A DNA stretch of 64,000 nt. It comes from Adineta vaga (lineage: Eukaryota; Animalia; Rotifera). Positions 14,518-63,137 of the stretch are shown piece by piece. The stretch spans positions 15,686,001 to 15,750,000 of the forward strand of contig CP075492.1 of the NCBI GenBank assembly GCA_021613535.1. The letters are read 5' to 3'. A program made the translations under genes and the position numbers. A model generated the notes under the pieces. It was given only the letters and a program-made list of their open reading frames with translations. It was not told the DNA's origin and made no database searches. Position 1 is the first letter of the stretch, and every line of letters begins with the position of its first letter.

Positions 14518-14760
14518 TTAGCAGCAGCAAGGATCGACACAACATTTGCGAACAACGCATGTTTTCTTCACAACTCTGACGACGGGTCGGTAGCAGACAG
14601 TCTTAGTGACGACAGTTTTCTTAACACAAGGACTACAGCAAGAATCGACACAGCATGATCCACAACCAGAACCGCAACATGAACCACATCCAGAGCCACA
14701 GCATGGATCACAGCATGAGCTGCCACAGCCAACACGGCATGATGATGAACAACAAGGCAT
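14518..14760 (-). CDS. 80-aa ultra-Cys-rich protein, copy 1
   Basis: MPCCSSSC...CCVDPCCC, 24 Cys; TATA at 14841-14848; AATAAA in the 3' UTR; seven copies differing mostly at synonymous sites. Confidence 0.85.
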   Translation of the reverse strand: MPCCSSSCRVGCGSSCCDPCCGSGCGSCCGSGCGSCCVDSCCSPCVKKTVVTKTVCYRPVVRVVKKTCVVRKCCVDPCCC

Positions 14761-14840
14761 ATTGAGATTGGTAGTGGGATGTGAAGTGAAACTAGAAGAC
14801 GATGAGAAGCAATTGATGGAAGTATGAGGAAACGTCTGCC

Positions 14841-14848
14841 TATATATA
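14841..14848 (-). promoter_or_regulatory. TATA box of Cys-rich gene copy 1 (conserved upstream of all copies)
   Basis: TATATATAGGCAGAC-like block about 80 nt upstream of the ATG in all seven copies. Confidence 0.65.
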
Positions 14849-15632
14849 CAAGAAAAGAGTAACGAAGAGAGTTGTTTTTTATTGACGAAAACAAACAATT
14901 ATTGCCCTGTTATGACGGTACTTAACATGCACATATCAGGCAAAAATATATGAGGAGAAAAAAATGTTTTGTTTCGCTCTATACAATACATCACACATCG
15001 ACCACTATGGCATATTATTATTTACTCATGCCTATTATCGATGATAGATCTTTGATGTGTGAGGGTGTGACAAAACATGGAAATTTAATTACAATAACTT
15101 CAACAGAACATCTCTGAAAGGATAAAATTCATGTGATGCATATTACGTTCGATAGTAAACGTTGTAACATTATCAAATTACGTGAATACCATAATGGAAC
15201 ACAAAAAGACATCGAGAACATGTGTAATATGCGGATAGAAGAAGAACATTGAGTGAACGTTTGAATAATGCAAAAACCGCGCATAAGTGAATGCACTGAT
15301 AGATTTTATTGGTTTAATGATCTTTGAATACCATGATTGAAGAAATATTCATACTTTCATCTACTCTCAAGATGCAAAATAAATACTCGACAATTCTACT
15401 TAGCATCTTATCTATAACAGTTAATTTTCATGATCTCTGTAGGGAGTCGAAAACTAGCAATCTTCTTCTCTTGTGTTACTTGTATTTATAGTTCATATCA
15501 TAAAATGTTCCTTTCATAAAATTCATACATCTACTTTTCGATACTAAACAATATTGATATTTTTTTGCCCGGGGTTTATTTCATGTTATGTAAAGTCAGT
15601 TTACAAAAAAATGAGAAAAAAAATTGTCCATG

Positions 15633-15874
15633 TTAGCAGCAGCAAGGATCGACGCAACATTTGCGAACAACGCATGTTTTCTTCACAACTCTGACGACGG
15701 GTCGGTAGCAGACAGTCTTAGTGACGACAGTTTTCTTAACACAAGGACTACAGCAAGAATCGACACAGCATGATCCACAACCCGAACTGCAACATGAACC
15801 ACAACCAGAGCCACAACATGGATCACAGCTGAGCTACCACAGCCAACACGACATGATGATGAACAACAGGGCAT
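15633..15874 (-). pseudogene. 80-aa ultra-Cys-rich protein, copy 2, frameshifted
   Basis: 242 nt versus 243 nt in the others; 1-nt deletion at about 15829 (gatcacagctgagc vs gatcacagcatgagc) turns GSSCC into GSSAV. Confidence 0.8.
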
Positions 15875-16989
15875 ATTGAGAATAGTAATGTAGTGTAGTA
15901 TAAAACTGGATGATGATGAGAAGTGGTTGATGAAACTGTGAGAATACGTCTGCCTATATATACATACTGAGACCGAGTAGCAAAGGTTTGTTTTCCTTTG
16001 ACAAAAAAATAATTTAATTATTACCGTATCATAAGATACCAAGCATGAACGAGTCATGCTTTATTCAGTACACCAAACAGGAACCACTATGACACATGAC
16101 TTTTCATCCATGCTTATTCGGAACGTGTTTCTTCTGGTTTTGTACAGTAGTGTAACAAAACATCGAGATTTGATTATACGTTGACTTCAACATAACAAGT
16201 CTGAAAAGTAAGAGTCATGTGATTTAGTTTTAGATTAAAAATATTGTTTACTATATTCTGCAGTACAACACAAAGACGCGTCTGAAAAGAATCGTAATAT
16301 TTCGATGGGAAAACAATCACGAAAACAATGTTGAATGAAGGTTTTGGTGATGAATGATGGCGAAGAGATGAACACACTATCATGTTCTTTTTGTTTTGAC
16401 TGAGTGTGTGTATTATCTCCTTACTTATGAAAAGGCAGATTACATGCAAAAAGTAAATCAAATTAATAAAATAACGTCGTACGAAAAGATAATTATTATT
16501 ACATAACATATTTTTTCATTGATAAATAATCAAGTAAACTATAATCACGGTGTGTTTTCGTCGATGTGACGAGTATTCTCATTCTGAAATTTCACTTATT
16601 ATTTCGTGAACAGTTGATTCTATACTTTCATATTTCCAAATAATTCCTATTACTAAAATCAACCATATTTCGTATGTAAAAGACGAGAAACTTAATTAAT
16701 CAAAGCTCGTGCAAGAATAAGTTTGTCGCATTGAACCAGTTTCTTAATGACAATAGACTCCAAAGACTCGGTGAAATTTAATAATTATACCCACTCTTTA
16801 GAAGTATTTCTATTAGTTATCGTGTTTTTTGATGGCGTGGGTGGACAGAATTTATTCTCGTCCGTACTTCACACTTTGCATAAACGATTCACTTCATATA
16901 TATTCTAGAAAATGATATTTTTCGCCCAGGTTTATTTTATATTCTACTGTGAGTTAGTTTACAGAAAAATGAGAAAAAAATTGTTCATA

Positions 16990-17232
16990 TTAGCAGCAGC
17001 AAGGATCGACACAACATTTGCGAACAACGCATGTCTTCTTCACAACTCTGACGACGGGTCGATAGCAGACTGTCTTAGTGACGACAGTTTTCTTAACACA
17101 AGGACTACAGCAAGAATCGACGCAGCATGATCCACAACCGGAACCGCAACATGAACCACAACCAGAGCCACAACATGGGTCACAGCATGAGCTACCACAG
17201 CCAACACGGCATGATGATGAACAACAAGGCAT
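16990..17232 (-). CDS. 80-aa ultra-Cys-rich protein, copy 3
   Basis: Protein identical to copy 1. Confidence 0.85.
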   Translation of the reverse strand: MPCCSSSCRVGCGSSCCDPCCGSGCGSCCGSGCGSCCVDSCCSPCVKKTVVTKTVCYRPVVRVVKKTCVVRKCCVDPCCC

Positions 17233-19164
17233 ATTGAGAGTAGTAATGGAATGTAGAGTAAAACTAGATGATGATGAGAAGTGGTTGATGAAAGTATGAG
17301 GAAACGTCTGTCTATTTATACAAGAAAAGAGAAACGAAGAAAGTTGTTTTGCGTTTGCGAAAATATATGATTAGAAAAAAGTTACGCTTCATTCAGTGCA
17401 TCAAGTACCAACCACTATCACACATTAATTTCAACTCATGCCTATTACAGCGTTTCTTCTCTGATTTGTTTGATCGTGTGAGAAACCATGGAAACGTGAT
17501 TACACATTAACTGCAACACAACAACTCTGAAGTGGCAAAAGTTATCTGATACGCTTCGTGATGAAAAATATTTCTTTTTACGTTCTATATTACAATACTG
17601 TAACTTCACCAAATTGAGAGTGTAGATGCCTCTTCTATTTCCTCACTCATCTCTATACACAATCCGCGAATTCAAATCTTCGATTTTATCATATTTTAGT
17701 TTTTTTTGTTCGGATAAAGCTTTAAGTACGTCTACGTACTTCCAAAGACATTAGTGACCTTGAAAAATATTGATAATCTTTGTGAACATGGATGTCTGTT
17801 TCTTCTCTGTCGACTTTTGTTGGAAAAAATGAGCTTATAAGTTGAATCTTCTTAGTTTCACATTGTTCAAGTTCTAAAGCTTGTTGCGCAATTTGGAGAA
17901 CTTCTTCTTCATATTATGCAGATGCATCGTATTTTTCGAGGCACGTGAATATTTCTGCTAAATTAATATAGGTATTAATTAAATCTGGATGATTATGTGG
18001 AAGATGTTTTTTCTAAATATCAAGTGCCTTCTGATTATTCAAAAATGCATCGTAATCTTTTGATTGTCAACGAATCCTGATACAATCAAAGAGACAGAAT
18101 TAGAACCGATCGCAAGTCTGTATAGAGTTTCAATTAGCAGTAAAGTGAAGTGAGAATGTCATGTAAGCGTTCTCTATTCTGTAATCAATATACGTCAACC
18201 TTTTCATAATAAAACAAGATTTTAAAAATACTTACTCTTATACTAATCTTAAAAGAAACATTTTGTTTACGTGATATTATGAATTTTGACCTCTCCTGTG
18301 TTGTTTTTCCGATAGAGATTAATTCGTACACATCCGTATTGAAACCCATATCTTCGAAGAATACGAGATATTCACACAGCACACTCTCGATGAGCAAAGT
18401 AAGGATTGCTTGACTAGACGAGCAAATAGGGATACAATAAAGAAATCTTTTTTGTTTCATTCCAAAGAAGTTCTAAAAGGCAGTCTAAATGAAGATAGAA
18501 GACGATCAAAATAAATATTCAAAAGCTTTAATTCTACGCAATGGAATTGGTCTCTTTTAGCTATGCTTGTCATCATTAGTTAGTTTGTGTGGAAGAAACT
18601 TTTCTTGTAAAAGCTTTTCTAATTCTTCTTTTAATGTCACAAAATATCTTGTCTTTTCAAAGCATTCGTAGGTTGAAAAATTGAAGTTAAACACTGTTTT
18701 TTCAAAGAAGTTGTAACTATAAGACCTATATCAGATAGAATATTATCATTCTAAAGACTAAAAGTGTAGATGGTCGAACCTCTTATAAGATTTGACGACG
18801 AACGTACAGAAATAGGAAAGAATTTTTCAGAATCTTTCCATTCTCATTCATCATTAACGGGTCAATGGATGAACTTTAGCTAGAATATGCTAAGAATAAT
18901 AAGAGGGTGTGGGTAAATGTAGTAATTCATTTTTCCTCACATCCACACCATCCCCACAGTAACCTGTTGATGATCACAATGCCAAGTCGAAAGCTCCTTA
19001 TATTCTTCTAGTGTTACTTCGGAATTCTCGATCATAGGAAAAAATGATTTTTACACCATTTCGATACTTCATATATATTCTAGAAAATGATATTTTTCGC
19101 CCGGGTTTATTTTATATTCTACTGTGAGTTAGTTTACAGAAAAATGAGAAAAAAATTGTTCATG

Positions 19165-19407
19165 TTAGCAGCAGCAAGGATCGACACAACATTTGCGAAC
19201 GACGCATGTCTTCTTCACAACTCTGACGACTGGTCGGTAGCAGACTGTCTTAGTGACGACAGTTTTCTTAACACAAGGACTACAGCAAGAATCGACGCAA
19301 CATGAACCACAACCGGAACCGCAACATGAACCACAACCAGAGCCACAACATGGATCACAACATGAGCTGCCACAGCCAACACGGCATGATGATGAACAAC
19401 AAGGCAT
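19165..19407 (-). CDS. 80-aa ultra-Cys-rich protein, copy 4
   Basis: Protein identical to copy 1, with synonymous differences. Confidence 0.85.
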   Translation of the reverse strand: MPCCSSSCRVGCGSSCCDPCCGSGCGSCCGSGCGSCCVDSCCSPCVKKTVVTKTVCYRPVVRVVKKTCVVRKCCVDPCCC

Positions 19408-20423
19408 ATTGAGAGTAGTAATGGAATGTAGAGTAAAACTAGATGATGATGAGAATTGGTTGATGAAAGTATGAGGAAACGTCTGCCTATATATACAAGA
19501 AAAGAGCACCGAAGAAAGTTGTTTCATGTTGACAAAAACAAATAATTATAACCCTGTTACGATAGTTCTTAACATACAAATGGCATGGAGAAACATGATG
19601 AGAACAGTTACACTTCATGTGGTGCATTACATCTCGATATACATGATGCATCACTTTTCACAGATGCCGGTTAATAATACCATAATTTTTACTTGTATGC
19701 GAGTGTAACAAAACATTGAAATTTGATTATACTAGAACTTTGAAAGGGTAAAAGTCATATGATGCACTTTTGATTGAAATTATTAAATTTTACGGTCTAT
19801 AATACAACGTTGTAACATTAGCAAATTATACGAATACCAGAACGTAAAACCCAAATGTATTAATAGAAAAATGTAATATATGAATATAAGGACAGCATGG
19901 AATAAATATTTTGATGATGGAAAGATGTGTAGAGATGATAGAGAATGAAATCATCAGTTTTACAACATTATGGTTCAAGAATATGATCTTACCGGTGAGA
20001 GTACTAATGATTCGTGGAGGTGTAAGGTGTAACACCGACCCTTTCTATCAAAAGAGATGATATTGATGTGTGGAAGGTAAAGAAAACACATCTAGTGGTT
20101 TTACAATTCGAATGAAAGTTAATTCCGTATGCTTAAAATACGTCGAAGAAAATTGATAACAATTAAATGTCAGTCACTCGATTGAATTAGATAGAGAGAA
20201 TTTGAAAATTTTATTTGTTGAAATATTATTTGCCACACTTGATCATTGACAAATATTTGTCTTTGCTATTCGAATTATATTCATACAATCAATTTTAACA
20301 AATTGAACGAATACCTATGTCTATTTGTATATATAAACAAGTTGAATATTTTTTGCCCGGGTTTTATTTTATATTCTATTGTGAGTCAGTTTACAGAAAT
20401 ATGAGAAAAAAAGAATGTTCTTC

Positions 20424-20666
20424 TTAGCAGCAGCAAGGATCGACACAACATTTGCGAACAACGCATGTCTTCTTCACAACTCTGACGACGGGTCGATAGC
20501 AGACTGTCTTAGTGACGACAGTTTTCTTAACACAAGGACTACAGCAAGAATCGACGCAGCATGATCCACAACCCGAACTGCAACATGAACCACAACCAGA
20601 GCCACAGCATGGATCACAACATGAGCTGCCACAGCCAACACGACATGATGATGAACAACAAGGCAT
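20424..20666 (-). CDS. 80-aa ultra-Cys-rich protein, copy 5
   Basis: G30S relative to copy 1. Confidence 0.85.
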   Translation of the reverse strand: MPCCSSSCRVGCGSSCCDPCCGSGCGSCCSSGCGSCCVDSCCSPCVKKTVVTKTVCYRPVVRVVKKTCVVRKCCVDPCCC

Positions 20667-22513
20667 ATTGAGAGTAGTAATGTAGTATAGTATAAAACTA
20701 GATGATGATGATGAGAAGTGGTTGATGAAAATATGAGAACAAGTCTGCCTATATATACAAGAAAAGAGCACCAAAGAAAGTTGTTTCATGTTGACAAAAA
20801 CAAATAATTTACGCTGTTATAATGGTACTTAAAATATACAGACGATGAAGAAACATATAAAGTATGATACATTATTTCTCACTCATGTTTATTTAGTAAC
20901 GTCTGTCCTTTGATTCGTATGATATAGTGTGAGGGAGTATCAAAATTTGATAACACATTAACTTTCACACCACAATTCGAAAGGGGTAAAAGTTATATTA
21001 TAACTTTTGATGAAAAATATTGTTCACCACGTTCCATAGTACAAAACAGTAACACTCTGAAATTGCATTGATATCATGGTGCAAAACAAAACAGCATCGA
21101 GAAAAATATGTAGTATATGGATACAAAGACAGCATAGAATGAATGTTTGACTGATGTAGAGGGGAATTCTTGAGGGTGGGTGTGGATGTGGGTCTATCAT
21201 TCATATTCCTTTGAGAACAGAAAAAGTATCTTATTTATCTGTCAACTGATAATATGTTGATATTTTCTATTTCAGGTGAAGGTATGTCAAAGACCAGATC
21301 TGTTGCTACTCATTGAATAGACTCTATAATCTAGTGTTGATCAATGGAAATCAAACATGGAAATCTCAATGAAGAATTATGAATGAATATGATGTTTGTT
21401 GTCCAGAAACAGAGATTGAATTGGACATAGTGTTACGTTGTGTATTCGAACATAACTGTAGATCCACACAAAATATTAATCAAAGTTAATAACGTTAGAG
21501 ATTTTTGTTTTATAAAACGTTCGGGTCATCTATACTTAGACGAATGACAATTAATGGCAGTTATGTTAATGAAATATTTCGTACAAAATTGTGGTGAAAT
21601 AAAATAAGAATAAACGAAAAAGAGTCGATGAAACTATGAATTAAAATGCGTGCATTTCTTATTTAATAACAATTCTAATTAAAATGTTTTATATAAAATA
21701 AATTCTACAATCTGGACTATATCTTTATCAACATTCTCAAATAATCCTATTTTATCTCAGGAAAAAACAAAAGCTCATCTATACAATCCGTATCACAATG
21801 AAGAATACTCAGCAGCATCTCGTATCCGTTGAGTAAGGCATTTGCTCATATATGAATTAGATAGTTTTAGGGAAAAAAATCAATCAATCAAAAGATTTTA
21901 AATGAGAATGATTTTTATCAAATTGACCTTTACATTTCGTATTTGATAAATACATCAGAAATGTTGTCACTATATGTTAATTTTTAGTAAAATACTACGA
22001 AGGTAAAACTACACTTTAAAAATCATATTGTAATTTTTTACTTCTCTACGTTAGTTTATCAACGAAAACGAATGGGTATAGTTGTTGATAGAATTGAAAT
22101 GTTCATTCTGGTATTATCAGTATCATCACATATTTGAGTATAATAATGGTCGCTTATTCTAAACCAATGAATAATGTCTTGACACTCATTAAATTACCAA
22201 CAATCTGCCAGGGTAATTTCTATTGGATTAAAATATGATAAAGTGCTTAGCTGCGTTGTAAATCAAGTTTTGTAGAAAAAGCAATTTGTTTTTCAAAATC
22301 CTGATATCATGTTTCCGGACTGAATTAGATAAGATCGGTACGACGAAGATATATCTCAGGGTAGTTTTATAGTTTGTATAGAAGACTTATGATAGTCGTT
22401 TTCAATGATAATTCATCAAGATATCCTTTTAAAATTGGTTAAGTTTTGAACAAAAATAATCAGAAGAATGTGTAATCTTTGAGTTAAGATGTTTGATCTT
22501 ATCATTTTTTTAG

Positions 22514-32338: not shown

Positions 32339-32347
32339 TTTGATATA

Positions 32348-38609: not shown

Positions 38610-38680
38610 GCCACTGTAGTACAATGGTAGTATCACGGTTTGTCTAACCGAAGGCCAGGGTTCAATTCCCTGCAGTGGCG
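38610..38680 (+). tRNA. tRNA-Asp(GTC)-like, with an atypical anticodon arm
   Basis: Acceptor GCCACTG/CAGTGGC, D arm GTAC/GTAT, loop TTGTCTA (anticodon 38642-38644), T arm CAGGG-TTCAATT-CCCTG, G73, downstream T-run terminator. Confidence 0.75.
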
Positions 38681-44806: not shown

Positions 44807-44913
44807 AACTCTTATCCTACAATTTACTATGTATCTCACACGTGTAAAGATTAAATATCCCTAGTTCACACACCCAACCTGGGAGTAACTGATCTTTATT
44901 GTGAAAAAAATAG

Positions 44914-47786: not shown

Positions 47787-47863
47787 ATCTTGAGGGTGGG
47801 TGTGGGTGTATTGGCATCGTATTTTAACAATATTCATACTCATTCTTACCCAGAACCACATCC
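47787..47863. repeat. Telomere-like palindromic short element abutting an F-box fragment
   Basis: ATCTTGAGGGTGGGTGTGGGTG ... CCCAGAACCACATCC. Confidence 0.55.
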
Positions 47864-47866
47864 AAA

Positions 47867-47938
47867 CTCCCTTTGCCATGTAAAATTCGACTGGATTTCT
47901 AGAGGGGCAAGATTTTATCGTTAAAACTCCTATTCTAC
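47867..47938 (+). pseudogene. Isolated 3' tip of an F-box array gene
   Basis: SLCHVKFDWISRGARFYR* matches the end of 43113-44806 (SLCHVKLNEIYRGARFYR*) plus its UTR. Confidence 0.7.
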
Positions 47939-48170
47939 GAGGTACTCTACAACGGGTACATTTTGAAATGTGATGCTTAATAGTATTTAACGTATTGTTA
48001 CTCGAGATATTCTAATTTTAAGTAATACAAATTCTTACATATTGAAACTGACATTTTCAATGAAAAACGACGTGTTTTATCGGTTCGATAATGAATGTCA
48101 ACAAACATCGCATTTTTTCTTCGTCTCCTACTACTCTAGTTATAGTGAAGTCACTTATTTTGCTTCAGTG

Positions 48171-49590
48171 CTTGTCGCATCAGCAAACATTATTTGTGAT
48201 ACTTCCAAATGAGATCATCTATTCTATTTTCGAATTTCTAACATCTTGATTTAACTCATGACTGGAATGAAAATCAACAAGATATACAATGGATTTCTTC
48301 ACTGATTGAACGATTCAATATTTATTGAATAGCTGATTGCCAATTTCCTCGCCTTCATTCATTATCACTTCAAAATATCTTTGAATGGAATACATTGATA
48401 TAGCGAATATAAACTTGAAAAATCCTACTCTTTACTTCGACGATGATCGAAAAGCTTCTTTTGATTCGAATATTGTTATACCTGAAGCAGTCATTCAATT
48501 CTCTGCCAATTGTAAACTACCCATCAAAGTTTATCCTCAAAATCTGATCGGATTAAAGTTATGTATTGCATTAATGGTTGATCTTGTTCAAATTGTCAAA
48601 CGGACTCCGTTTCTTCAACGTTTATCGGTCACTTTCACAGAAGACTTTTATATTTTTGAATATGAAGAAGAATGGTGTTCTGATTATTTGCAAAAGATGA
48701 TTAGCAATTTTCAATTATCGAACAAATTAAATTATCTTTCTTTTTCTATTGACAGTAGTCATATAGATAGAATAGAAGAAAGATTCACTAATAGTACACA
48801 ATTCGTTCATAATATTTGAAAAGAAAGTTGATTGTTGGTAGAAAGTTATAATATATTTTATATTTATTTATTACCAGTTCGTTCCGATAATTTGTATCAC
48901 TTGAATTTGTGTTTAATACACAATGATCATATTTCATTCTCTAATATTTGCTATCTTCACATCGTCGATAGTGATGCCAGTTATACAATTATCATTTCGT
49001 TCAATAGCGAAACATATGCCAAGTCTGATTTCAATCCATTGTAATATTGGTTCTCTTCATAATAATAATATCTTCATTCCTGAGATTGTTCTTGATGAAG
49101 ATATATTTCATTATATTCGTTTTCTCCATTTGCCTTTAACTTGTCACTATAATGGATGTGTTTGTGGAAATCTTGTTTCTCGTTTACTTGATCGAACGCC
49201 AAAATTGGAATGTCTCAATACTACAAATGATGGCTTTCTTTTTGAACAACTTCAATTTCCATCTATTAAACAATTTATTTATCGCAAATACAAACCAATA
49301 TCAATCAATATGATAATAAAATGTTTACCAAATCTGACAACACTTTCTGTTGAACATTTTGGGATATCTGTAAACAAGATATCAACATTTATTAGTTCAT
49401 TTTTCCTTGCTCTTCCTTCGTTCAAATCAATTTCCTCTCATCATGGTACAAGATGTATTAAGGGTAAAACATCTTACGAAAAATATATGCAAGAAGCACT
49501 AGCACTTATACAAAATATGAATCATTCTCTTCGTCATATAATAGTTGATTTCAAATGTTGAGTAGCAACATTTTATCGTCGAAACTTCTA
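48171..49590 (+). pseudogene. F-box array pseudogene B
   Basis: QTLFVILPNEIIYSIFEFL without an ATG; deletions and frameshifts; homologous to 53665-55344. Confidence 0.75.
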
Positions 49591-50027
49591 GACGACCATC
49601 AACATGAGTACGATCTACGATTTGTTTATTATCTTTCAAAAATACATACAAAGAAATTTTTAGATGTTGGATAGAAAATATTTTGAGAGTTTGTATAAAT
49701 ATACATGTAACACTTGCATGTACTCATTCGCACATATTAGTATTTGTCTTGATTTAAAAATAATAAACGAGCGACAGATGATATTATTCTCTTGATGATA
49801 AAATTATAAGTCAATAACCACCCGAAATAGCTTGATAGCTTAACTTTCGGCGAAATCAAGTTTGGAGAAAACTTTTTTCCAGTGGAAGAAAACCATCAAG
49901 ATTAATTTCCACCTTTCTTACTTCCTCCGCAATCCATGTCATATAAAATCGTGAGGCACTTATAGAAATTTACACTATTAATATATTTTGGTACATCCAA
50001 CTTGTGTTAAACAATCCGAAGGTGATC

Positions 50028-50210
50028 ATGCAAAAAATAAACCAGTTGATATTGTTGGTTATGTTTGTTCTTCTCCTTGCAACATTCTGCATGACAAAAG
50101 CAGTTGGAGATCAAGTTGAAAATAGTCATTCAATTAGCAAGCGTGAGTGTGGTTGGTTTTGGCCTGCTTGTTGTCGTTATACATGCTGTATTTTCCAAGG
50201 CCAATGTTGA
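50028..50210 (+). CDS. Small secreted 6-Cys peptide precursor (signal-pro-KR-mature)
   Basis: MQKINQLILLVMFVLLLATFCMTKA-VGDQVENSHSISKR-ECGWFWPACCRYTCCIFQGQC*; TATAAAA at about 49942, AATAAA at about 50237. Confidence 0.8.
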   Translation: MQKINQLILLVMFVLLLATFCMTKAVGDQVENSHSISKRECGWFWPACCRYTCCIFQGQC

Positions 50211-50924
50211 CAATCGTCACTCTAATGAGACTATAGAATAAAATGATATTCGTATTATTCTTTATTACATTTTTTCTTCTTATTTAATCCTGATTTAAAA
50301 TATAAAATATTTCATTATTCATTTGATTTTTTACGTAAAAGAAAACAACAAGAATTAATTTAATATGTCAACGAAGCACATTAAGAGTGACAGATGCACA
50401 TGCATCATTACTTTTATGATTATACCTTCTCTGCACATAGGAACTGGAAATCTACAGGTACCTTTTTCATCTTCGCTTTTTCTGAATAAATGAATGACTG
50501 AAAGGAAGGAAAAAAATCGTAATAAAAGCCATCTGGCATTCGATAAAATGCAAACAAATCAAACTCAACGTTTGATTTCTTCGCTTAGTCATAGAACGTG
50601 ATTTTTTTATGGACTTTTACATACATTGTGGTAATCATTTCTTTTTCAAACATTCTAATTTTGTCTCGATGTACTTTTTCTTGATGAAAATAACTTGGTA
50701 AAGAGAAATACAATTAAGCAGCGTTACGTACGGTAAATGCGTTGCTTTCAATAGAATGTCAGGTATAATATAGGAAATGTACTATTTGAGTTCAATCAAC
50801 ATAATTCAAATCAATGTCCTTTTTCTCGCAAAAAATACGTATAAAAGATAGAGAATCGATCAGAAGATACCCACAATATTTCTTCTAAGCTTTCCATATT
50901 TAACTATAAATTCAAGATTTCTAA

Positions 50925-51271
50925 ATGCAAACCGGTTGCGTTTTAGTATTGGTGAGTTAATTAAACGTGAAGATAAATATACCTCTGTTTGTCTTTACAT
51001 GGTAATAACTAATCAAAATATTATTGCTCAACATTTTCAGGTCGTTTTCTTGGCAATTACTACCAACTTAATTCTTGGTCACCCATCAAATCGTGATGGT
51101 TCTCGTGGACGTGCACCAGAAAATAACGGCAATGGAACATACACCATTGGTCCTCCACCAGGTAATATTACTGGTCAACCGTTTCCATCAGGTAACGGAA
51201 CAGATCCTGGTGAATTACGACCATCTTTCAATGGTACACGGCCGTCAGGTCCACGTCAACCGCCTTTTTGA
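50925..51271 (+). CDS. Small secreted Gly/Pro/Asn-rich glycopeptide, 85 aa, 2 exons
   Basis: Exon 50925-50951, intron GTGAGT...TTTCAG (50952-51040), exon 51041-51271; signal MQTGCVLVLVVFLAITTNLILG; four N-x-T sequons; TATAAAA at about 50840. Confidence 0.7.
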
Positions 51272-52092
51272 AATAACTGAGAACAATAATTAAGAGACAG
51301 TTTCATATTAACAACGATGTTTATGACCTTTGACTAATCAGTTTCACTGCTGCTTCTGTTACTAACATTTTTTTCTGCATACAAAATATACAATTATTAA
51401 TATGAACTGACATAGTTTTGCTCAGAAAAACTCATCATATGTCAAAATGGACAACACTACTGATATCTTGGTCGCATCAAATATGATTTACAAAGTTTGC
51501 CTATCACATGAAAAAAGAGTAATAAAAACGATGATCTTGTTCGATCATGTATCAGATTCAAATGTATTACACAATCTTATCGATAAAAGTCAAGACGGCT
51601 TGTATAGAAATAGTTGTAACTTTTTCTCCAATACAATAAAAGATTGTTAAGATCAGAAGTTCATGTATTTATTGTGTGAGGGTGTGGATGTGAGTGTCAT
51701 ACATCTACTCACTAGTGTCCTGCAGGAACAACTTTTTCCCTATTTTCTCATTCCCAATTTGGATTTAGGGAATGGAAACGGAGCTAAAAATTCATGTTCC
51801 CTAAATTTTGTTCATCTTATTTTTTTATATATACACATACTTCTATCTTGTAGCTGTTTTTTTTTTAAATTTTCTTTTTTTATACATAATTAACAGAAAA
51901 TAATAAATTTGCACCAAAAAATTAGACTATTGGTTGATTTTTAACGCTATAATAATTGAATCATCACAATCACCCACAATAAAAATCAATACCAGCAGTA
52001 GTAGTAGGTGCTTCTTGGATTGCGTAAGAAATATGTCTGAATATTCGATGACCATCAGTTTCATTGGGAATTTTATTTCTAATACTAAAGAC

Positions 52093-52146
52093 ATCTTGAG
52101 GGTGTGGGTACTTCATCTATCTAACACCTGCACCCACCCTCAAGAT
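52093..52146. repeat. Telomere-like palindromic short element (best-preserved termini)
   Basis: Perfect 12-bp terminal inverted repeat ATCTTGAGGGTG ... CACCCTCAAGAT. Confidence 0.7.
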
Positions 52147-52357
52147 TTTATTCTATAAATTACTCGACATCGAATATGTTTAAACATTGATGCATGATGT
52201 ATTGTTATTCTAGATGCTCTAATAATGAATAATAAAAAAATTTACATATAAAAACAGCATGTTCTATCTGGGCAGTAATATATGCCAATAAATATCACGC
52301 TTTTCTTGTTCGTCACTTATTTCATGTATAATGTCGTCAGTTATTTTGCTTCGGCGC

Positions 52358-53497
52358 ATGTCACAACATCAAGCATTATTTGTGATACTTCCAAATGAAA
52401 TTATCGATATAACACTCTCGTTCAATCGTATATTACAAGTCTTGATTTAATTCATGATTGGAATGGAAATCAACAAGATATACAATGGATTTCTTCACTG
52501 TTTGAACCATTGAAAATTGATCGATTTAATGTTATGTATTAAATCCATGGGTGATCTAATACAAATTGTCAAACAAACACCAATTCTTCAACATTTATGG
52601 ATCGCTTTTGCTAGAAATCTAGAAATGTCTGACGTTGCCGATTTTTGTAAAATAATTTCCATCCATTAAACAAATTAAATTATTTTTCTGTCTCTACGCC
52701 AGAAGAAGCGGATAAATTTCGTGAAATTCAAATTTTTATCGATCAATGTTGTTCAAATAACAAAGTTTTAAAAATAATCAGTATAAAATTGTATTCGATC
52801 GATTTCAATGAATTTTGATGAATTTTCAAATGAAATGAAAAATAAACATGTCAACCGTACACAGTTTATTTATCATATTATTAAACAAGGAGATCTATTA
52901 GAACCAACGGATCATTATTTCCATATGTATTCATTACCATTTCGTTCAATAGCACAACATATGCTGTATCTTATTTCAATCAATTGGAACTTTAATTGTT
53001 TTCATGAAATCAATATCATTCTTCCAGATACTATTCTTGATGAAGATATATTTCATCATCTTCGCTTTCTCCATTTTCAATCAACTTACTATTGTCCACG
53101 ATGTACTTATCTAAATCTTCTTTCGCGCTTGCTTAATCGAATGCCGAAATTGGAATATCTCATTACTTCAGATGATAATTTTCTTTCTGAACAACGACAA
53201 TACCCGTCTATTAAACAATTCATTTCCCGTAAATTCAACTTGAAATCAATTGACACGAAAATAAAATGTTTCCCAAAATTAACAACACTTTCTCATGATC
53301 ATCTTGGGATATATTCACACAAAATCTCAACATTTGTTAGCTCATTTTTCTTTTCTCTTTCTTCATTCAAATCAATTTCCTCTCATTATGGTTCAAGAAG
53401 TAGTTATACTTATGCAAAATATGCACTCTATTCTCTTCGTCATATAATACTCGATTTGGAATGTGGTATAGCAACATTTAATCGTCGCAATTTCTAA
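52358..53497 (+). pseudogene. F-box array pseudogene C
   Basis: MSQHQALFVILPNEII start with internal deletions and stops; close paralog of 48171-49590 including upstream DNA. Confidence 0.75.
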
Positions 53498-53664
53498 CTA
53501 AATCATCCATTTTCACCATGTTTTGTGTCAATAAATAAATTCCAACATACGAATTCCTCACGAACATGATTCATAGTAATAATCCGACCCAAAGCAGTAT
53601 TTGTTTTCGTCGTCTCGTGAAAACATTTCTTTCTGTTGTTCGATTGCATTTTATTTTCAACAAA

Positions 53665-55344
53665 ATGTCCCGACAACGAACGTTATTTACAATACTTCCC
53701 AACGAAATTATTTATGATATTTTCTGTTTTCTATCAACAAATGATATCGTTCGAGCGTTTAGTAATCTCAATAATCGATACAATGCTCTTATTCGAGCAC
53801 ATGTAAAGAGTATCGATTTAACTGTTGGTTGGAGAGGAACTCGACAAGATTTACAATGGATTTGTGAAACGATTCAAATTTTGAAAATTAATCAGTTACA
53901 TCTTTGGTTAGTAGATCACTGTCAGTTTTTTCAACTTCATTCACTTGAACTCCAAAACGTACTGAAATGGAATAATTTCATCTCGACAATGAATTTAACA
54001 AGCTTGTCTCTTCAATTCAATAATAAACTTCATTCTGATCGTGATGAAATTACAATTCCTCTTGATGTAATTCGATTTTGTGTCAATAGTAATATAGATA
54101 CATTACATAGAAATCTTATTGATTTGAATATTGAAGTTGGTTCAATGGTTTCACTTCTTGGAATTATCAAACATACACCTCTTCTCGAACGTTTATCAGT
54201 CACTTTCGCAGGAAGATTTACCAATCACGATCAAAGACATATGGATTTAATGGTTGAAGACTTCCAACCATTGAACAAATTAAATCATCTTTCTCTTTCA
54301 ACAAAACCAACAAGTACGACATTTATGAATGGTCATTTATCATTTCAGCATATACAACTATTTGTAAATATATATTGTCCAAATGAAAAGATTTTGAAAA
54401 GAATTATTCTTCAACTATATCATATCGACATTGAAGAAGAAATGTGGTCAACCATTGAACGATATAAAAATACATTTGATCGCTTTGATTTCTATGGTTT
54501 ATTTAATATGAATGAACAAATTATTCAATTGGTAGAAGAATTAGTACGCACAACATATTTCGATTATTACAATCAAACAGCTGATCAATTATATGGAGAA
54601 TATCGTTTAGTTCATGTCTATTCTTTACCATTTCGTTTTGATAAAATCTATAATTTTACTTCTTGTTCGGAACTTAATCCTCACACATCATTTGCCAGTG
54701 TTCGTCATCTTTATTTTAGTGAAAGTTATAAAAACCATTTGATATCATTTCAATCTTTATCTGAACGTATGCCAAATCTTATTTCAATTAATTGCCATGT
54801 TAACGTTGATCACGATGTTAATATCATTGTTCCAAAGTTGATTATAGATGGAAATCTATTTTCTAGTGTTCGTTCTCTTCGATTTATCGCTATTTGTACT
54901 GGTGAGAAATGTAATTGTTATAGTCTTCTTGGTCGATTACTTGATCATATGCCATGTTTGGAAGATTTAAAAACATCGGAAGGCGTTTGTCTTCTTGAAC
55001 ATAAACCGATATTAATCCTCAAACGATTAATTAAATCAAGATGTGATTTAAGATGTGTTCATACATTAGTAAAATATTTACCCCGTTTGAAAATCTTATC
55101 AATTGGTCGATTACGAGGATCTCCGAAAGAAATATCAAAATATATAGCTCCACTTTTCATTCGATTATCATCTTTCATGTCGATTTTCTTCGAATTTGTT
55201 ATACTAAATAAGTTTTATCCAACAACTAATAAAATCAACATCGAAGAAACGTTGACACTTATGAAACGAAAATATCATTCACTTAACTATATAAAATTCG
55301 AGTTGATTGGAACCGTAGTTCGATTTTATCGTGTTAACTCTTAA
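53665..55344 (+). CDS. F-box protein (array member D, intact)
   Basis: MSRQRTLFTILPNEIIYDIFCFL...AFSNLNNRY, LRR-like repeats, HVYSLPFRF motif. Confidence 0.85.
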   Translation: MSRQRTLFTILPNEIIYDIFCFLSTNDIVRAFSNLNNRYNALIRAHVKSIDLTVGWRGTRQDLQWICETIQILKINQLHLWLVDHCQFFQLHSLELQNVLKWNNFISTMNLTSLSLQFNNKLHSDRDEITIPLDVIRFCVNSNIDTLHRNLIDLNIEVGSMVSLLGIIKHTPLLERLSVTFAGRFTNHDQRHMDLMVEDFQPLNKLNHLSLSTKPTSTTFMNGHLSFQHIQLFVNIYCPNEKILKRIILQLYHIDIEEEMWSTIERYKNTFDRFDFYGLFNMNEQIIQLVEELVRTTYFDYYNQTADQLYGEYRLVHVYSLPFRFDKIYNFTSCSELNPHTSFASVRHLYFSESYKNHLISFQSLSERMPNLISINCHVNVDHDVNIIVPKLIIDGNLFSSVRSLRFIAICTGEKCNCYSLLGRLLDHMPCLEDLKTSEGVCLLEHKPILILKRLIKSRCDLRCVHTLVKYLPRLKILSIGRLRGSPKEISKYIAPLFIRLSSFMSIFFEFVILNKFYPTTNKINIEETLTLMKRKYHSLNYIKFELIGTVVRFYRVNS

Positions 55345-56186
55345 ATATTATTATATCCTCATCGAATAATGAAAGAATCATCAATAATGCAGAGTCAATT
55401 TGATGTTGTGGACACATTCTACTTACTCTTGATATTTTATTGCACTTAATAAAGAGATAAACGAAATAATTTTTAGTAAATATCCAATTATGAAAATCTT
55501 GGGAGTGGGTATGAAAAGAAAAGAATTATCTCATTTACATGCTCATGTCTTCGCCTATTTCACTCATATTCCATTATTTTTCAAATGATCTCGAGAGTAT
55601 GTGGATATAGATTTGCGTTTGTGTAGGATAGCCTTCTTTTCATTCATTTCACATCCACACCGTCAGGAATGATAGGAATAATTTACGGCGCATGTTATAT
55701 ATAATTCTCAGCACTTATTCACTCATACTTCTGCGTGCCTCTGTATCATCGACACATTCATACAATGCTGTTGTTATTGGACTTTCATTCATATACCTTT
55801 TGTTTACACTATGTTATGATTATAACGTAGAACGCCGCAAACAATATTTTCCATCTAAACATGTATGAAATGACTGTTACCTTTTCAGAGTTGTCATGTT
55901 CAAATTAAGGTACAGTCAAGTTGCGATGTTTTTCACAGTATCATACAGATCAGAGGAGAGACGTTGTAATTGGCATGAGCGAGAAATAATGTGTCATGTA
56001 GTAGTCGATACTTGATACGCTGAATGACGCATTACTTTTTGCTCATTACATGTTTTTTCAAGATGGGAAACCACTTTCTTCGTTGCCCTGTCCTAGTAAA
56101 TATATAGGCAGTCATTTTCTCATACTTTCATCAATTGCTTCTCATCGTCTTCTAGTTTTATTCTATAGTACATTATCACTATCAAT

Positions 56187-56429
56187 ATGCCTTGTTGTTC
56201 ATCATCATGTCGTGTTAGCTGTGGCAGCTCATGCTGTGATCCATGCTGTGGCTCTGGTTGTGGTTCATGTTGCAGTTCGGGTTGTGGATCATGCTGTGTC
56301 GATTCTTGCTGTAGTCCTTGTGTTAAGAAAACTGTCGTCACTAAGACTGTCTGCTATCGACCAGTGGTCAAAGTTGTGAAGAAGACATGCGTTGTTCGCA
56401 AATGCTGTGTCGATCCTTGCTGCTGCTAA
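56187..56429 (+). CDS. 80-aa ultra-Cys-rich protein, copy 6
   Basis: G11S, G30S and R62K relative to copy 1; TATA at about 56097-56107. Confidence 0.85.
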   Translation: MPCCSSSCRVSCGSSCCDPCCGSGCGSCCSSGCGSCCVDSCCSPCVKKTVVTKTVCYRPVVKVVKKTCVVRKCCVDPCCC

Positions 56430-56889: not shown

Positions 56890-57623
56890 TGATTATATAT
56901 ATATACCTTCTTTCCTGCCCTGCCTTAGCTAGTGTAACTCTTCAGGTCGCCACTCAGCTCGAGTTACCTGTCTTTCACACGTCTTTCTCCTCCGTACCGA
57001 GACCCTTCCTGTATCCCTGTTCGCGTCATGCATCCGGTGTTTTTTTCAGAACTTTCCACATCTCTTCATTAATTCTTTCCTACTGGTCGTGTTTCGCTAT
57101 GCATACAACACACAGCTCTGTTCCTTTTAAATCCACTCCTATTGTCCCGCTGCAACTCCCACCCCTCGATAGATCTGCTTATTCTCAGACGCTCACTGCA
57201 AGTCATTCTCTAGTTTATAACCTTCACTTCGACTCCATACAGTTAGAGTAGTCATTTCCCTCCAGATTCAGTTTTTTCTGAGAACCCACCCATGCATTGT
57301 AGTTGTCCATTTTGGATGCAGACACCAACGCCCCTACCCCCACCCCTGATGACCATTCTAACCCCATGTCGACCTTCCTCTGTACTTAGGGAAGCACTGT
57401 GAAAAGTTTCGGAATGTTATCTATCACGGAACTGCCTGGGTGAAGTTTCACCTACGGCCCTAATCCCCACTCTCACCCCCAATGACCATTCTAACCCCAT
57501 GGCGACCTTCCTCTGGATCTAAGGAACTTTTGTGGAAAGTTTGGCGACATTAGCTACTACAGGGACTGAATGCACAGCGAAGAGAGAAACAAACAAACAA
57601 ACTTTCTTCTTTATAAATATAGA
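56890..57623 (-). mobile_element. Non-autonomous Helitron-like fragment
   Basis: The minus strand starts A|TCTATATTTATAAAGAAGAAAGTTTGTTTGTTTG (Helitron-like 5' end with microsatellite). Body is GC-richer with a 133-bp-period repeat (57349/57482). Hairpin GTAACTC..GAGTTAC precedes CTAG near 56930, but the 3' end is not canonical. Confidence 0.45.
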
Positions 57624-57654
57624 TAATCATATTTTTAGCTGGCTTATTTGATTG

Positions 57655-57772
57655 TTGAGGGTGGGTGTGGGTGTGGGTAGGTGCGAGTGTGGATTTAGAT
57701 CTGAAGATGTAGGTATATCTTCTTCACTGACATCTTCACCCCACACCCACGTCCACCCACCCACACCCTCAC
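57655..57772. repeat. Telomere-like palindromic short element (G4-capable)
   Basis: TGAGGGTGGGTGTGGGTGTGGG ... CCCACACCCACGTCCACCCACCCACACCCTCA. Confidence 0.7.
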
Positions 57773-59063
57773 AATCCATTGCATTTAACATTAATGCAAA
57801 TTTCACTGTAATTCTTCATACTTCATGTGGGAAAAAGACCGAATGGCAACAAGCTGAAAGAATGCTGAAACGAAAAAGCAACTATTCAATCTAAATATTA
57901 TGTTGGTATTGCGATGTAAATAGAAGAAATCATTCATTCGAACACACACAAGTGACAGAACAGTCAAGAAAAGTAGGTGGTTACATTTTAAGAAAATATT
58001 CAATGATTTACCCAAGCGCTTTTTGTACAAGAATTTAATTATAGATCATTGAATATGAAGATGATTGTTACATGATCTCGACTAGGAATGAGACCCTAGT
58101 TTGTGAAGACAACGGTTCAGCGTGCGTGTGAGTGAAGGCAAGGATGAGAATGCCCGCAAATATCGATCGAATTGATAAGTCTCAATAGATTCTTAGTATA
58201 GAAATAAAAATTCTTTGGGAAAATAGATTTCAAAAAGTTCTAGCAATCCCTTTTGCTGAATGCGTTTTGTAAACCTAAATAACTTTTTCTATTCATTATA
58301 TAATTTGTCTTGTCATTGTTTAAAAAATTTCTATTACAACATACTGAAGTTTTCATATAAGCTAAGCTACGTGCCATTTTCAATCCTGCATGAGCCTACA
58401 GGTCAATTCTATCTTAGTTGCTAGCATCTATATAACGCTGAGAATACTTTCTATTCAGGGATGTTGATCATCGCGGAGTAGGATGACTACTCAGAACTCG
58501 ATGGATAAAAATTTCCAGAATGTTCCAGAAAATGATACTCGGGCCTTTGCAGAGTCTTCTGAACTAATCCTGAATTCTCTAAGAATATGATGAGTGAGTC
58601 TGCAAAGAAAATTTTCAGCACTTAAATCTCTTTACAACTCTCTATAGTACTTCAAAAAGCTTTTAGAACCTACGAAAGATTTTGGAATTTTATATTATCA
58701 TTCTGAAGCCTCAAATCTCCTAGACGATTTCAGATATAAGTAGTTTTCAAACGACTTAGAAAAGTATCTAAAATTACTGAGATTCAATCGGATCAGGAAT
58801 TGCAATGATTGAAAACACAATCGCCATAGACTTCGCACTGATGGTGAGATAACGAGGTAACGAAGCGATGAAACAGCGAGGGTTCAATGGCTGAAGAGTC
58901 ATGCGACTTATTAATTCGCGTATGTTAGAGTCATAGCGATTGCGCCGTATGTCCTAACAAACACTCATTTACACCTATCCATCGTAGAAATTAGATCGTT
59001 TTAGCTATTATTACAAAGGTGTTATTGTAGAATATAATGGGAACTATAGTTAAAAACATCATT

Positions 59064-60921
59064 ATGGAATTTCACGGCCAACTAAATTCATTATTGTATG
59101 ATAAGGGAACAAACTCGTTTTGGAGTTTTCTGGAACGGAAGACAAACTTAAAACGTGATCATATTGCTTTAGGTATATTGTAATGATTTTATTCCTTACC
59201 ATGTTCATCATTTTGTTTCTTGAGGTTTGTTTGGATTTCTTGCTGTATATTTATTATTTTGTTGGGGCAATGATTTTCTTTGTAATATCATCGGAATTGT
59301 CTATCCAGCATATGCTTCGTAAGTTTACGTTTTCTCTCAATAAATCTTTTTATAGGAACTTTTATACGGTGAAAACGAACCGCTTTACAAATTTTCACTA
59401 TCGACTTCGACTTCATTTACATTATTTAGGATATTAACTACAGAACTAGGTGCATCTAATGATAAGAGGAAGTGGCTCATATACTGGCTTATTTATTCAA
59501 CACTTTTCTTGGCTGAATATTGGAAACATACTTTTAAACACTCACTACCATTTTATTGGTTAATCAAATGTATATTTCTTATTTGGTTGATGATATCAAA
59601 ACAAACGATCAACATTTGTCAGCAACTCATTCGTCGATTTGTTCCTTTACATTCATCGGTAAGAATTTAGAACTATAACGATAATGTTGATAATAAAGGA
59701 TTACGATGTGGAAAATATGTTTTGAAATTTAATACTACTATAGATATGAGAAAAGCGAGTCTTTCATTGCATTTGAATATATTGTTATGTAAAAGATATT
59801 TTCTTGTATAACGCTCGTCTGGGCAGCCTTTAAATATACTAGTACATATAAATTGTCTTCTTTAGCCCCAATCAATAAAAACCAGACTTATACTCAATCC
59901 GCCCAATGAAAACATCGAATTACATATTAAAAAAGTTGGTAACGCTGCAGTAACTAATCGTCTTCAACCTGATGCGCAGGGCGTTGTTGGTCTCGATTCT
60001 CTTGGCAACGGAAGTTTTAACGTAGAAGCTTTTTCTTTGCAAATGACGCCATTGCTATTACTGCATAGATTTCAAATTACAGTATATAATTCTGCTGTAA
60101 ATGTACAAGCTGTCGATCTACAAACGACGATTCTTCATTCTACTTTTCAGAAAAGTGATAAACCATTTGACGGAGCTCAAGTTCGAGGTAAATTTACCTG
60201 TAAGCAAGGTCATACCTACAATTTGAATGGTCAAACTAATAATGAAGGTATTATCACTATTGTCCTTCCAGAAGGCACCGTTGACAGTTTTACAGCAGAA
60301 AAAGACAAGATTGGAGTTTCAAAACAAGGAAACATCGCTATTCCACCACCAGCACCTACACCAGTTACTGTTCCACGGCCACCGAAATACATCATCATTG
60401 ATCTTAATTCATCAAGCTTTAGTTCGTCGATAAATCCTACAGAGAAAGATGCGCGTGTCGTTATTCTCGGTGATATATCGGGATCTATGGGAGCAGAAAC
60501 ACAGATGGACATACTACGTCGCTCATTTCAGGAAATTTTTGATAAATGCCAAAAGAACAAATGGAGTGTATCATTAGCTGCGTGGAATGATAAAATAGAC
60601 TGGTGCACTGAGACATGGATTCAGTCGAGCCAAGCCCAGGCCGTCAAATCATGGATTGGTTGTCAGCGGGCTCGCGGGGGGAACGACATGCGAAGAGCAA
60701 TCGAAGACTGTATGAAGCGTTATTCAAGTGCCACTGATGTGTATGTCATGTGTGATGGTGATATAACTCCATTCGCGAATCCCGAAGTAGACTGGCGTAA
60801 TTTTCGTAATCAATTTTTAAAAACAAAATTTCATTTTATTGCACTTGGAGCTCATGCTGCATACGCACCGATGGAGACCATGGCTACAATCGGTGGTGGC
60901 ACATTTACTCATACTACTTAA
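59064..60921 (+). CDS. Predicted REEP (TB2/DP1/HVA22) - beta-rich linker - vWA fusion, 4 exons, 495 aa
   Basis: Exons 59064-59172, 59225-59318 and 59430-59658 give FLCNIIGIVYPAYAS, KWLIYWLIYS and PFYWLIKCIFLIWL. A phase-0 intron 59659-59865 joins an exon with vWA motifs DISGSM, GGND and MCDG. Confidence 0.65.
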
Positions 60922-61294
60922 GGAAAGATGATGAAACTATGCATATGCGCTATCAATTTAACTGAGAAACAAGAAGAAATGAGATATTCTAGAATTTTTA
61001 TAAAAAAATATATTCTATACCAGATCATTTTAATCAATTGATCCAGCTTATTTAAAATGCTGATAATAAATTAACGTAATGAAATAATAAATAATAAATT
61101 CTGTCGAAGATGATATCACATAAGATGCTACAAATCTTCTAGTCATAAATATCATAAAAAGAAAATGATGCCAGTTAATAAAACCATTATGTCAAGAAAC
61201 GGTTACTCGGATAAAACCTATAGTATATTACCAATATGTTATTTTTCGACGTATGTGTTAAAATTTTCACCCAAATATTCACTTATAGCATTAT

Positions 61295-61440
61295 AGCTTT
61301 TTTTATTACTCAAAATACTCTACAGTATTGTAAAAGTCTTATCTTCGTCAGTATTTTCGCTGACATTCATCCTTAGAAAACGATAAGATATTTTTGATTC
61401 AGACAAGGGATTTAAGACTTATCTGCATTTCCGACTCAAA
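61295..61440 (+). repeat. 146-bp direct repeat, right copy
   Basis: Near-identical to 56744-56889. Confidence 0.85.
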
Positions 61441-61572
61441 CTATAAATATTTGTATAGAACGTATATCTTCATCTTTCTTTACTAAACAATACATAAACA
61501 AGCTATTCTTATCAACGACAAAATACTGAAAGAGAACGGATATATCTATCTCACTTAATCGCTTCGCAAATA

Positions 61573-62005
61573 ATGTCTAAACAAGCAGATACGAAATTGG
61601 ATGTGCCAGATTTTCCATCAGAGTGGAGCTGTATGTACAATACTTGCCAGTTTTTTCACTTCAACCTTTCTATTTATAACATTTGATTGGTTTGATGACA
61701 CCAATATTTGCCTCTATGGTCTTTTCTACCCATCTTGTCTGTTTGGAGATAATGTTAAGATTAAGAGGACAAAAAGTGTCATTACATTCAGCTGTCCCTG
61801 CTTTTGGTATGGACTGAATCTACTGTGTTTAAATTGTTGGTATTTTCATAAAAGGCAACGATTCAATTTGCGATATATTTACGGTCTTCTATCAGGATGT
61901 GGTGATTGTTCTACTACAACATTTGGTGGACCTTGCGCTTTATGTCAAGAAGCAAGAGATCTGAATGCTTTCCTATTTCTGTACGTTCTTCGTCAAATCT
62001 TATAA
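61573..62005 (+). pseudogene. PLAC8/cornifelin-like Cys-rich protein, probably degenerate
   Basis: FDDTNICLYGLFYPSCLFGDN, RFNLRYIYGL, GDC, PCALCQEARDL. First exon MSKQADTKLDVPDFPSEWS|gtatgt has no clear AG acceptor; several family Cys are substituted. Confidence 0.6.
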
Positions 62006-62894
62006 GAGGTTCAACCATCTACACTTTTAGTCTTCAGGAATGATATATATTCTATTTAATATACATCTCATGACTAAAACTTCTTTGGAAAAACAGTGTT
62101 TAACCTCGATTTACAACATACATAGCAATTACAAGCTTTGCCAATAAAGATCAATTTTGTCATGCAAAACTAATGTTTGTAACATTTTCTCCTAGATATC
62201 TTAAACATTTACATTTGTTTATATACTTTTTTTTCGAATGACTTTGACGGTATGTGGATATTAGTTTGAGTTTGTACAGTTGTCTCCTTTTCTTAAATTC
62301 ACCATCCACATCCTCAATCCAATCAAACAAACATTTAAAATTGTCCATACACTCAAGTTTAACGGGATGAATGTTGAGACTACTAGGGACAACTTAAGGT
62401 CTATGTTCGCGTGCATGTTTTTGTATCATCAGCATGTTCATTCAATACTGTTGTTATTGACTTTTCATCCATGTATTTTTTGTTTGTATTATTTTAGGGT
62501 TATGATGTATTTTGATAATGTTACAGTGCTGTAATGTAGAACATAACAAAACAATATTTTCTATCAAAAACTGTATCAGGTGACTTCTACCCTTTCAGAG
62601 TTGTTGTGTTGAAGTCAATGTATAATCAAATTGCCATGCTTTATTATACAGTAACCAATACTTCATGTATTGAATACACCGTAACTTTTTTCTCATTATA
62701 TGTATTCTTCATGACATGTGTAAGTTAAGTACCATCGTAGCAGGGTACTGATAATTGTTTTTCTCAACAGAGACCAACTTTATTCATTACTCTGTTCTCC
62801 TATATATATATATAGCCAGACGTTTCCTCATACTTTCATCAGTTGCTTCTCATCGTCTTCTAGTTTCACTTCACATTCCACTACCAATCTCAAT

Positions 62895-63137
62895 ATGCCT
62901 TGTTGTTCATCATCATGTCGTGTCAGCTGTGCCAGCTCATGCTGTGATCCATGCTGTGGCTCTGGTTGTGGTTCATGTTGCGGTTCCGGTTGTGGATCAT
63001 GCTGTGTCGACTCTTGCTGTAGTCCTTGTGTTAAGAAATGTGTCGTCACTAAGACTGTTTGCTACCGACCAGTGGTCAAAGTTGTGAAGAAGACATGCGT
63101 TGTTCGCAAATGCTGTGTCGATCCTTGCTGCTGCTAA
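62895..63137 (+). CDS. 80-aa ultra-Cys-rich protein, copy 7
   Basis: G11S, G13A, T49C and R62K relative to copy 1; TATA run at 62801-62813. Confidence 0.85.
   Translation: MPCCSSSCRVSCASSCCDPCCGSGCGSCCGSGCGSCCVDSCCSPCVKKCVVTKTVCYRPVVKVVKKTCVVRKCCVDPCCC

Follow-up and report, generated by a model that had tools for sequence, protein, structure and literature searches.

A 64,000-nt window of the Adineta vaga genome (contig CP075492.1, positions 15,686,001 to 15,750,000 of the forward strand; contig 3 in the genome coordinates below) was found to carry seven copies of a gene for a small cysteine-rich protein. We consider it about evenly balanced that the copies represent a family of small, basic structural proteins of bdelloids that have no leader and are candidate intracellular disulfide cross-linkers; these would resemble the keratin-associated proteins (KRTAPs, or KAPs) and avian EDCRP by independent origin. 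The first-pass annotation of this DNA had reported five copies on the minus strand, one of them frameshifted, and two on the plus strand, and all seven were recovered at its positions. The copies and the parts of copy 1 are as follows, in window coordinates (CDS, coding sequence; UTR, untranslated region).

14518-14760, minus strand: copy 1, intact single-exon CDS of 80 amino acids (aa) with 24 Cys
14626-14760, minus strand: Cys/Gly/Ser arm of copy 1, residues 1-45, mostly 4-residue units; variable in length among copies and species and disordered in the structure model
14545-14625, minus strand: basic Val/Thr/Lys core of copy 1, residues 46-72, kept across species; a beta-hairpin in one AlphaFold model
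14761-15200, minus strand: 5' UTR and promoter of copy 1, about 400 to 450 bp alike among copies, with a TATA box at 14843-14848
14449-14465, minus strand: poly(A) signal of copy 1 joined to a CCCGGG element, largely specific to family genes
15633-15874, minus strand: copy 2, with a frameshift from the loss of 1 nt at CDS base 46, outside a homopolymer; a pseudogene or an assembly error
16990-17232, minus strand: copy 3, intact, same protein as copy 1; TATA box 17315-17320
19165-19407, minus strand: copy 4, intact, same protein as copy 1; TATA box 19490-19495
20424-20666, minus strand: copy 5, intact, with G30S; TATA box 20752-20757
56187-56429, plus strand: copy 6, intact, with G11S, G30S and R62K; TATA-like box 56101-56106
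62895-63137, plus strand: copy 7, intact, with G11S, G13A, T49C and R62K

Judged from the copies themselves, the family is well supported as protein-coding and under purifying selection. The 80-residue protein is the same in three minus-strand copies, and the remaining intact copies of the window differ from it by one to four residues. A nearly invariant protein over varying synonymous sites had been proposed, together with a comparison of substitution rates among the copies, and this comparison bore the proposal out. Across the 17 intact copies found genome-wide, mean synonymous divergence (dS) was 0.345 and mean nonsynonymous divergence (dN) was 0.020, giving a dN/dS of 0.057, far below 1, and of 0.041 for the C-terminal 44 residues. 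An allele count over 13 gap-free copies gave 42 synonymous versus 10 nonsynonymous alleles over 54 versus 186 sites (binomial p about 1e-18). The copies are stop-free only in the Cys frame, and the other reading frames were rejected because all contain stops. Longer starts, giving 120 aa, were also rejected; only 4 of the 19 copies have an in-frame upstream ATG, and it precedes the TATA box. The dN/dS of 0.06 is joined in support of the protein-coding assignment by the common TATA box, the Kozak context, a 3' element specific to the family, and signs of gene conversion.

Ahead of the ATG, the copies have in common a TATA-like box about 88 nt away, similar 5' UTRs, and a CAAT; downstream, an AATAAA lies 40 to 55 nt past the stop and is followed by a CCCGGG-like element. 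The TATA box and AATAAA noted in the first-pass annotation were both confirmed. Searched in its strict form over 100 Mb, the poly(A)-CCCGGG element matched exactly at 13 sites, 12 of which lie at family genes; a control pattern matched nowhere. A match on contig 4 was rejected as a family gene, as it has no Cys-rich open reading frame (ORF). The element was also found in Adineta steineri and, in a looser form, at a metagenome ortholog. The upstream DNA is similar among copies, as had been described, over about 400 to 450 bp by BLAST rather than about 500 bp. Upstream identity averaged 72% over the proximal 330 bp, compared with 92.5% for the coding regions. Because the coding and upstream distance matrices showed no correlation (rho 0.06, p 0.43) and the four-gamete test was failed by 292 of 528 informative-site pairs, a result to which recurrent mutation at saturated synonymous sites could contribute, the data point to exchange of sequence between copies by gene conversion. 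Such signs of conversion between paralogs are of interest in an asexual genome.

The family is larger than the seven members first counted. A search of the A. vaga assembly (100.8 Mb, six contigs) found 19 near-identical copies. Eighteen lie on contig 3 within 15.700-15.774 Mb, two of them frameshifted, and are laid out as five minus-strand copies, a 35-kb gap of unrelated genes, and thirteen plus-strand copies; copy 7 opens a plus-strand run of 12 that extends beyond the window to contig 3:15773554. Contig 1 holds one intact copy of 82 aa and one remnant. The intact copy sits in a 1.7-kb duplicate of copies 7 and 8 (87% identity) and was read as a segmental duplicate, a homeologous origin being rejected, and the remnant, near 13254470, has an in-frame internal deletion that leaves 20 codons but retains its TATA box and 5' UTR. 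A retrocopy origin was rejected, since similarity reaches about 400 bp upstream, beyond the TATA box, and for some pairs continues far past the A-run. The near-identical copies encode 72, 80, 84, or 88 aa, mostly in four-residue steps, apart from the one of 82 aa. In addition, a divergent single-copy paralog of 118 aa at contig 5:4979446-4979802 has the same core, with CAPT/CDPC/CAPK-type tetrapeptide repeats; it was first seen as a weak match (E = 2), but its upstream DNA resembles that of the other genes (BLAST E 5e-11), and it shares their 3' element. A profile search of the genome gave no members beyond the contig 3, 1, and 5 loci. The intact total is about 18 genes, the contig-5 paralog and 17 near-identical copies, the latter supporting the dosage amplification that had been suggested. 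None of the A. vaga family proteins looked up was present in a collection of 15 billion proteins, which does contain the product of a neighboring gene; annotation therefore appears to have overlooked nearly all of the genes. In a much-studied model, 18 intact genes under strong selection would thus seem to have escaped annotation.

The 80-aa protein is built from eleven amino acids, among them 24 Cys (30%), 13 Val, 11 Ser, 8 Gly, 6 Lys, 4 Arg, and one Tyr, with no His, Phe, Trp, Leu, Glu, Gln, or Asn and a net charge of +7. No hydrophobic leader was found in it (top 9-residue Kyte-Doolittle window, 0.8), and the length, Cys fraction, lack of His, and lack of a signal peptide noted earlier were all confirmed on the copy sequence. 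Residues 46 to 72 contain nine Lys/Arg and no acidic residue. The CC-rich short repeats and the leaderless form support the KAP-like architecture that the first-pass annotation had described.

Relatives were sought, as had been recommended, by a single-sequence search over 5.8 billion proteins, phmmer over 1.84 billion proteins, profile searches, and searches of JGI metagenomes. The single-sequence search returned no homologs, phmmer one, and the profile searches two; the JGI metagenomes gave none, apart from two chance pattern matches in stop-riddled frames. The recovered relatives were members in A. steineri and on one metagenome contig, and none beyond these was found in the protein and metagenome searches. 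A. steineri has two tandem members, one of 71 aa (an unnamed protein at NCBI) and one of 59 aa located 3.7 kb downstream. The 59-aa member (13732-13911 of the stretch read) carries both a stop and a poly(A) element of its own, and the NCBI model 13732-16591, which fuses it to NHL-repeat exons, is probably a mis-model. The ENA metagenome contig encodes a 95-aa ortholog (residues 65-159 of its protein) with recognizably similar promoter and 3' DNA, and we read its source as a rotifer. In an alignment of the A. vaga, A. steineri, and metagenome members, the invariant columns cluster in the core, with the pattern Thr-Val-Cys...Pro...Val-x-Val-x-Lys-Lys-Thr, and in the terminal CC. Across members, the length ranges from 59 to 118 aa and the Cys count from 11 to 32, the Cys arm being variable; the A. 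steineri members and the contig-5 paralog have 19 to 24% Cys.

AlphaFold, run with a shallow alignment, placed a long hairpin in the protein (strands 42-57 and 60-75; pLDDT about 80 over residues 51-70) and left the arm disordered. The Chou-Fasman beta propensity of the core exceeded that of the rest in all seven members examined. A beta-hairpin core is thus plausible but weak as a prediction. The T49C variant, which requires two base changes and occurs in five copies, would face Cys68 if the register follows the strand limits. Searches of PDB by sequence and fold and of the Atlas by fold gave nothing meaningful.

As an account of function, the many copies would provide a burst of high expression, for mass production in one cell type. 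The core would form a beta-hairpin and pack on itself or bind an acidic partner, for example, cytoplasmic intermediate filaments, for which the many intermediate-filament loci of the A. vaga genome offer possible partners. The CC pairs would then oxidize to intermolecular disulfides, hardening the assembly into a network. The variable arm length suits a cross-linking matrix, as avian EDCRP tolerates the same variation.

Rotifers and acanthocephalans have the intracytoplasmic lamina as their defining skeletal feature; we know of no lamina proteins identified at the sequence level. The lorica of Brachionus was reportedly described by Bender and Kleinow as keratin-like and disulfide-linked, needing a reducing agent to dissolve. 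An electron-dense lamina lies inside the rotifer epidermis (PMC13403294), and another paper, citing others, gives keratin and chitin as the material of the rotifer shell (PMC7926626). A location of the cross-linker in this lamina is a tentative reading, with a likelihood that we rate as fairly low. There it might be an independently evolved cornification-type protein working in a living syncytium through a self-assembling beta-hairpin core and a KRTAP-like arm, with cross-links perhaps changing on drying and rehydration. The family offers a concrete candidate for a lamina protein. If this were confirmed, the convergent Cys-rich cornification proteins of hair (KRTAPs), feather (EDCRP), and lamprey teeth would extend to a layer hardened inside the living cells of an invertebrate.

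Several points weigh against the cross-linker proposal. The living cytosol is reducing, and KRTAP cross-linking takes place in dying keratinocytes. Only two copies were present in the 20 kb of A. steineri read. The hairpin is the best of five models (mean pLDDT, 52 versus 36 to 44 for the others), and for the A. steineri protein no confident structure model was obtained; the Val/Lys segment that had been called beta-prone therefore forms a hairpin in one AlphaFold model, a result not reproduced in the second species. No monogonont relative was found in the searches, and the loricate monogononts have the thickest lamina. Because small single-exon genes often go unannotated, the monogonont blank is weak evidence, and the true taxonomic range may be wider.

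Next, we compared the family with known Cys-rich systems. KRTAP genes are single-exon, TATA-driven, and clustered, and avian EDCRP consists of CCDPC-core repeats with 29 to 38% Cys, in which the repeat number varies and the ends are fixed (PMC4423139). KRTAP-like proteins have also evolved independently in lampreys (PMC12101200). The rotifer genes likewise have a single coding exon (read from DNA), a TATA promoter, and tandem clusters, and their products share with the KRTAP5/SCYGR-type ultra-high-sulfur KRTAPs a small size, about 30% Cys, CC pairs with Gly/Ser spacers, and the absence of a leader. The top Atlas look-alikes were SCYGR-, KAP3-, and KAP16-like clusters (0.79 to 0.82), which are leads only. 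Unlike KRTAPs, the rotifer family has a conserved basic Val/Thr/Lys core and belongs to an invertebrate with a living syncytial epidermis, and homology to KRTAPs was not detected: there was no Pfam or HMMER match, a PF13885 genome scan missed the family loci, and no KRTAP appeared in the homolog searches. The likeness to EDCRP lies in the CCDPC motif, about 30% Cys, and a variable repeat number between fixed termini. EDCRP differs in its CCDPCQ core, rich in Gln and Lys for transglutamination, whereas the rotifer family is essentially Gln-free (one Gln in total across the seven members examined, the residue after CCDPC being Cys), far shorter, and without an epidermal differentiation complex (EDC) locus. 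Sauropsid corneous beta-proteins and silkmoth high-cysteine chorion proteins pair a short core that forms beta structure with flexible flanks rich in Cys and Gly, and the rotifer proteins share this plan; the chorion proteins are secreted, and the rotifer core is strongly basic. No Pfam, PDB sequence, or fold match connected the rotifer family to the corneous beta-protein core, and no Pfam or fold match linked it to the chorion proteins. Filing the family under KRTAP, EDCRP, corneous beta-protein, or metallothionein was rejected, as each fails a sequence-level test. No paper on the family was found in the literature; the sequence family is unnamed, and the convergent Cys-rich structural protein is a kind already known. 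By analogy, the rotifer proteins most likely work like KRTAP and EDCRP.

The first-pass annotation had left the choice between a convergent KAP and a metallothionein or metal/redox sponge. In the latter case, the Cys arm and tail would bind Zn, Cd, or Cu or scavenge oxidants in desiccation, with the copies giving dosage, and we regard such an atypical metallothionein or thiol buffer as unlikely. Its appeal comes from the 30% Cys, the 8-kDa size, the missing leader, the single aromatic residue, and the tandem amplification, all as in metallothioneins, and from the disorder of the arm in the model, a trait of apo-thioneins. Ciliates have CC-rich metallothioneins. Moreover, a chain with 24 Cys, whatever its function, will take up some soft metal in vitro, which leaves a metallothionein role a low probability. 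Metallothioneins differ from the family in several respects, however. Cys-X-Cys was absent from the six Adineta members examined (the metagenome ortholog has two), no member gave a Pfam metallothionein match at E limits of 1 to 10, and the genes have no introns. Metal response elements (MREs) were at background, in 1 of 19 promoters versus 1.8 expected by chance, which is weak evidence because Caenorhabditis elegans metallothionein promoters also lack MREs (PMC4101491). Three phytochelatin synthase (PF05023) loci (contig 4:6925383-6926076, contig 6:2046894-2047460, and contig 3:14991455-14992003) also count against this role. Finally, the Cys number is unfixed, at 11 to 32, while the Cys-poor core is invariant, and this conservation across species favors the structural reading over the metallothionein one. 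The analysis gave no positive evidence for a self-assembling metal/redox sponge.

A membrane-tethered protein of the cortical skeleton, articulin- or alveolin-like, overlaps the disulfide cross-linker in location and differs in chemistry: the terminal Cys would be S-acylated and the Val/Lys core would polymerize under the plasma membrane. Terminal Cys motifs and a high Val content mark protist epiplasm proteins; the rotifer members all end in CC or CCC and have a basic, Val-rich core, and the rotifer lamina lies inside the epidermis. We nevertheless consider this improbable, since there is no CaaX motif (position -4 is never Cys) and no myristoylation Gly, and Cys is far in excess of anchoring needs. 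In addition, acidic residues alternate with Lys in alveolin repeats, which is not so in the rotifer family.

We also consider improbable a ciliary or axonemal accessory-fiber protein of the Mst(3)CGP/ODF1/SMCP type, stiffening coronal cilia or rootlets. CCGPCC units occur in 4 of the 19 A. vaga copies, one of them a broken copy, and in the metagenome ortholog, and the contig-5 paralog has a C-x-P-x periodicity. The precedent is Drosophila Mst(3)CGP, a clustered Cys-Gly-Pro family required for axoneme assembly (PMC10645079). Its proteins are small, clustered, intracellular, Cys-rich, and structural like those of the rotifer, some copies of which have CGPC units, but CGP is a minority motif missing from most rotifer copies, and the homolog searches gave no sequence match to Mst(3)CGP, ODF1, or SMCP. 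The known examples, including Mst(3)CGP, are sperm-specific, whereas bdelloids have no males, and we know of no Val/Lys core in the Mst(3)CGP family. A cationic beta-hairpin defense peptide released without a signal peptide, or a protectant binding polyanions such as nucleic acid, would suit the nine Lys/Arg without an acidic residue in 46-72 and a hairpin with possible cross-strand cysteines, but is very improbable given that there is no leader or pro-region, that neither hairpin face is purely hydrophobic in the inferred register, and that the copies are homogenized (dN/dS 0.06) and not diversified, as most defense-peptide families are.

The DNA around the copies has features of its own. Between copies 6 and 7 (59064-62005) lie a vWA-domain exon (PF13768, 60043-60921) and a PLAC8-family ORF (PF04749, 61601-62005); PLAC8 proteins, which are rich in Cys, have been linked in plants to cadmium resistance. 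Between copies 3 and 4, minus-strand ORF fragments at 17800-18800 are broken and resemble a decayed TPR-type gene. The region 56900-58200 is GC-rich with GT-type microsatellites, and its part 56906-57333 recurs at 88% identity about 47 kb further along (contig 3 near 15790200); the region is possibly a small repeat element. Tandem divergent F-box/LRR-like ORFs, several of them broken, fill 43113-55344, and one tRNA gene lies at 38610-38680 (Rfam RF00005, 60.5 bits). An NCBI-annotated ORF of 188 aa at 9687-10253 has an apparent N-terminal leader and no family match above the cut-off. Outside the window, PF13885 matches on contig 1 were not taken as KRTAP-like genes, being a Thr/Pro/Gly/Gln repeat without cysteines. 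At contig 1:3802000-3819000, about 15 kb of mucin-like, cysteine-free Thr/Pro/Gly/Gln pentapeptide repeats run in long open frames.

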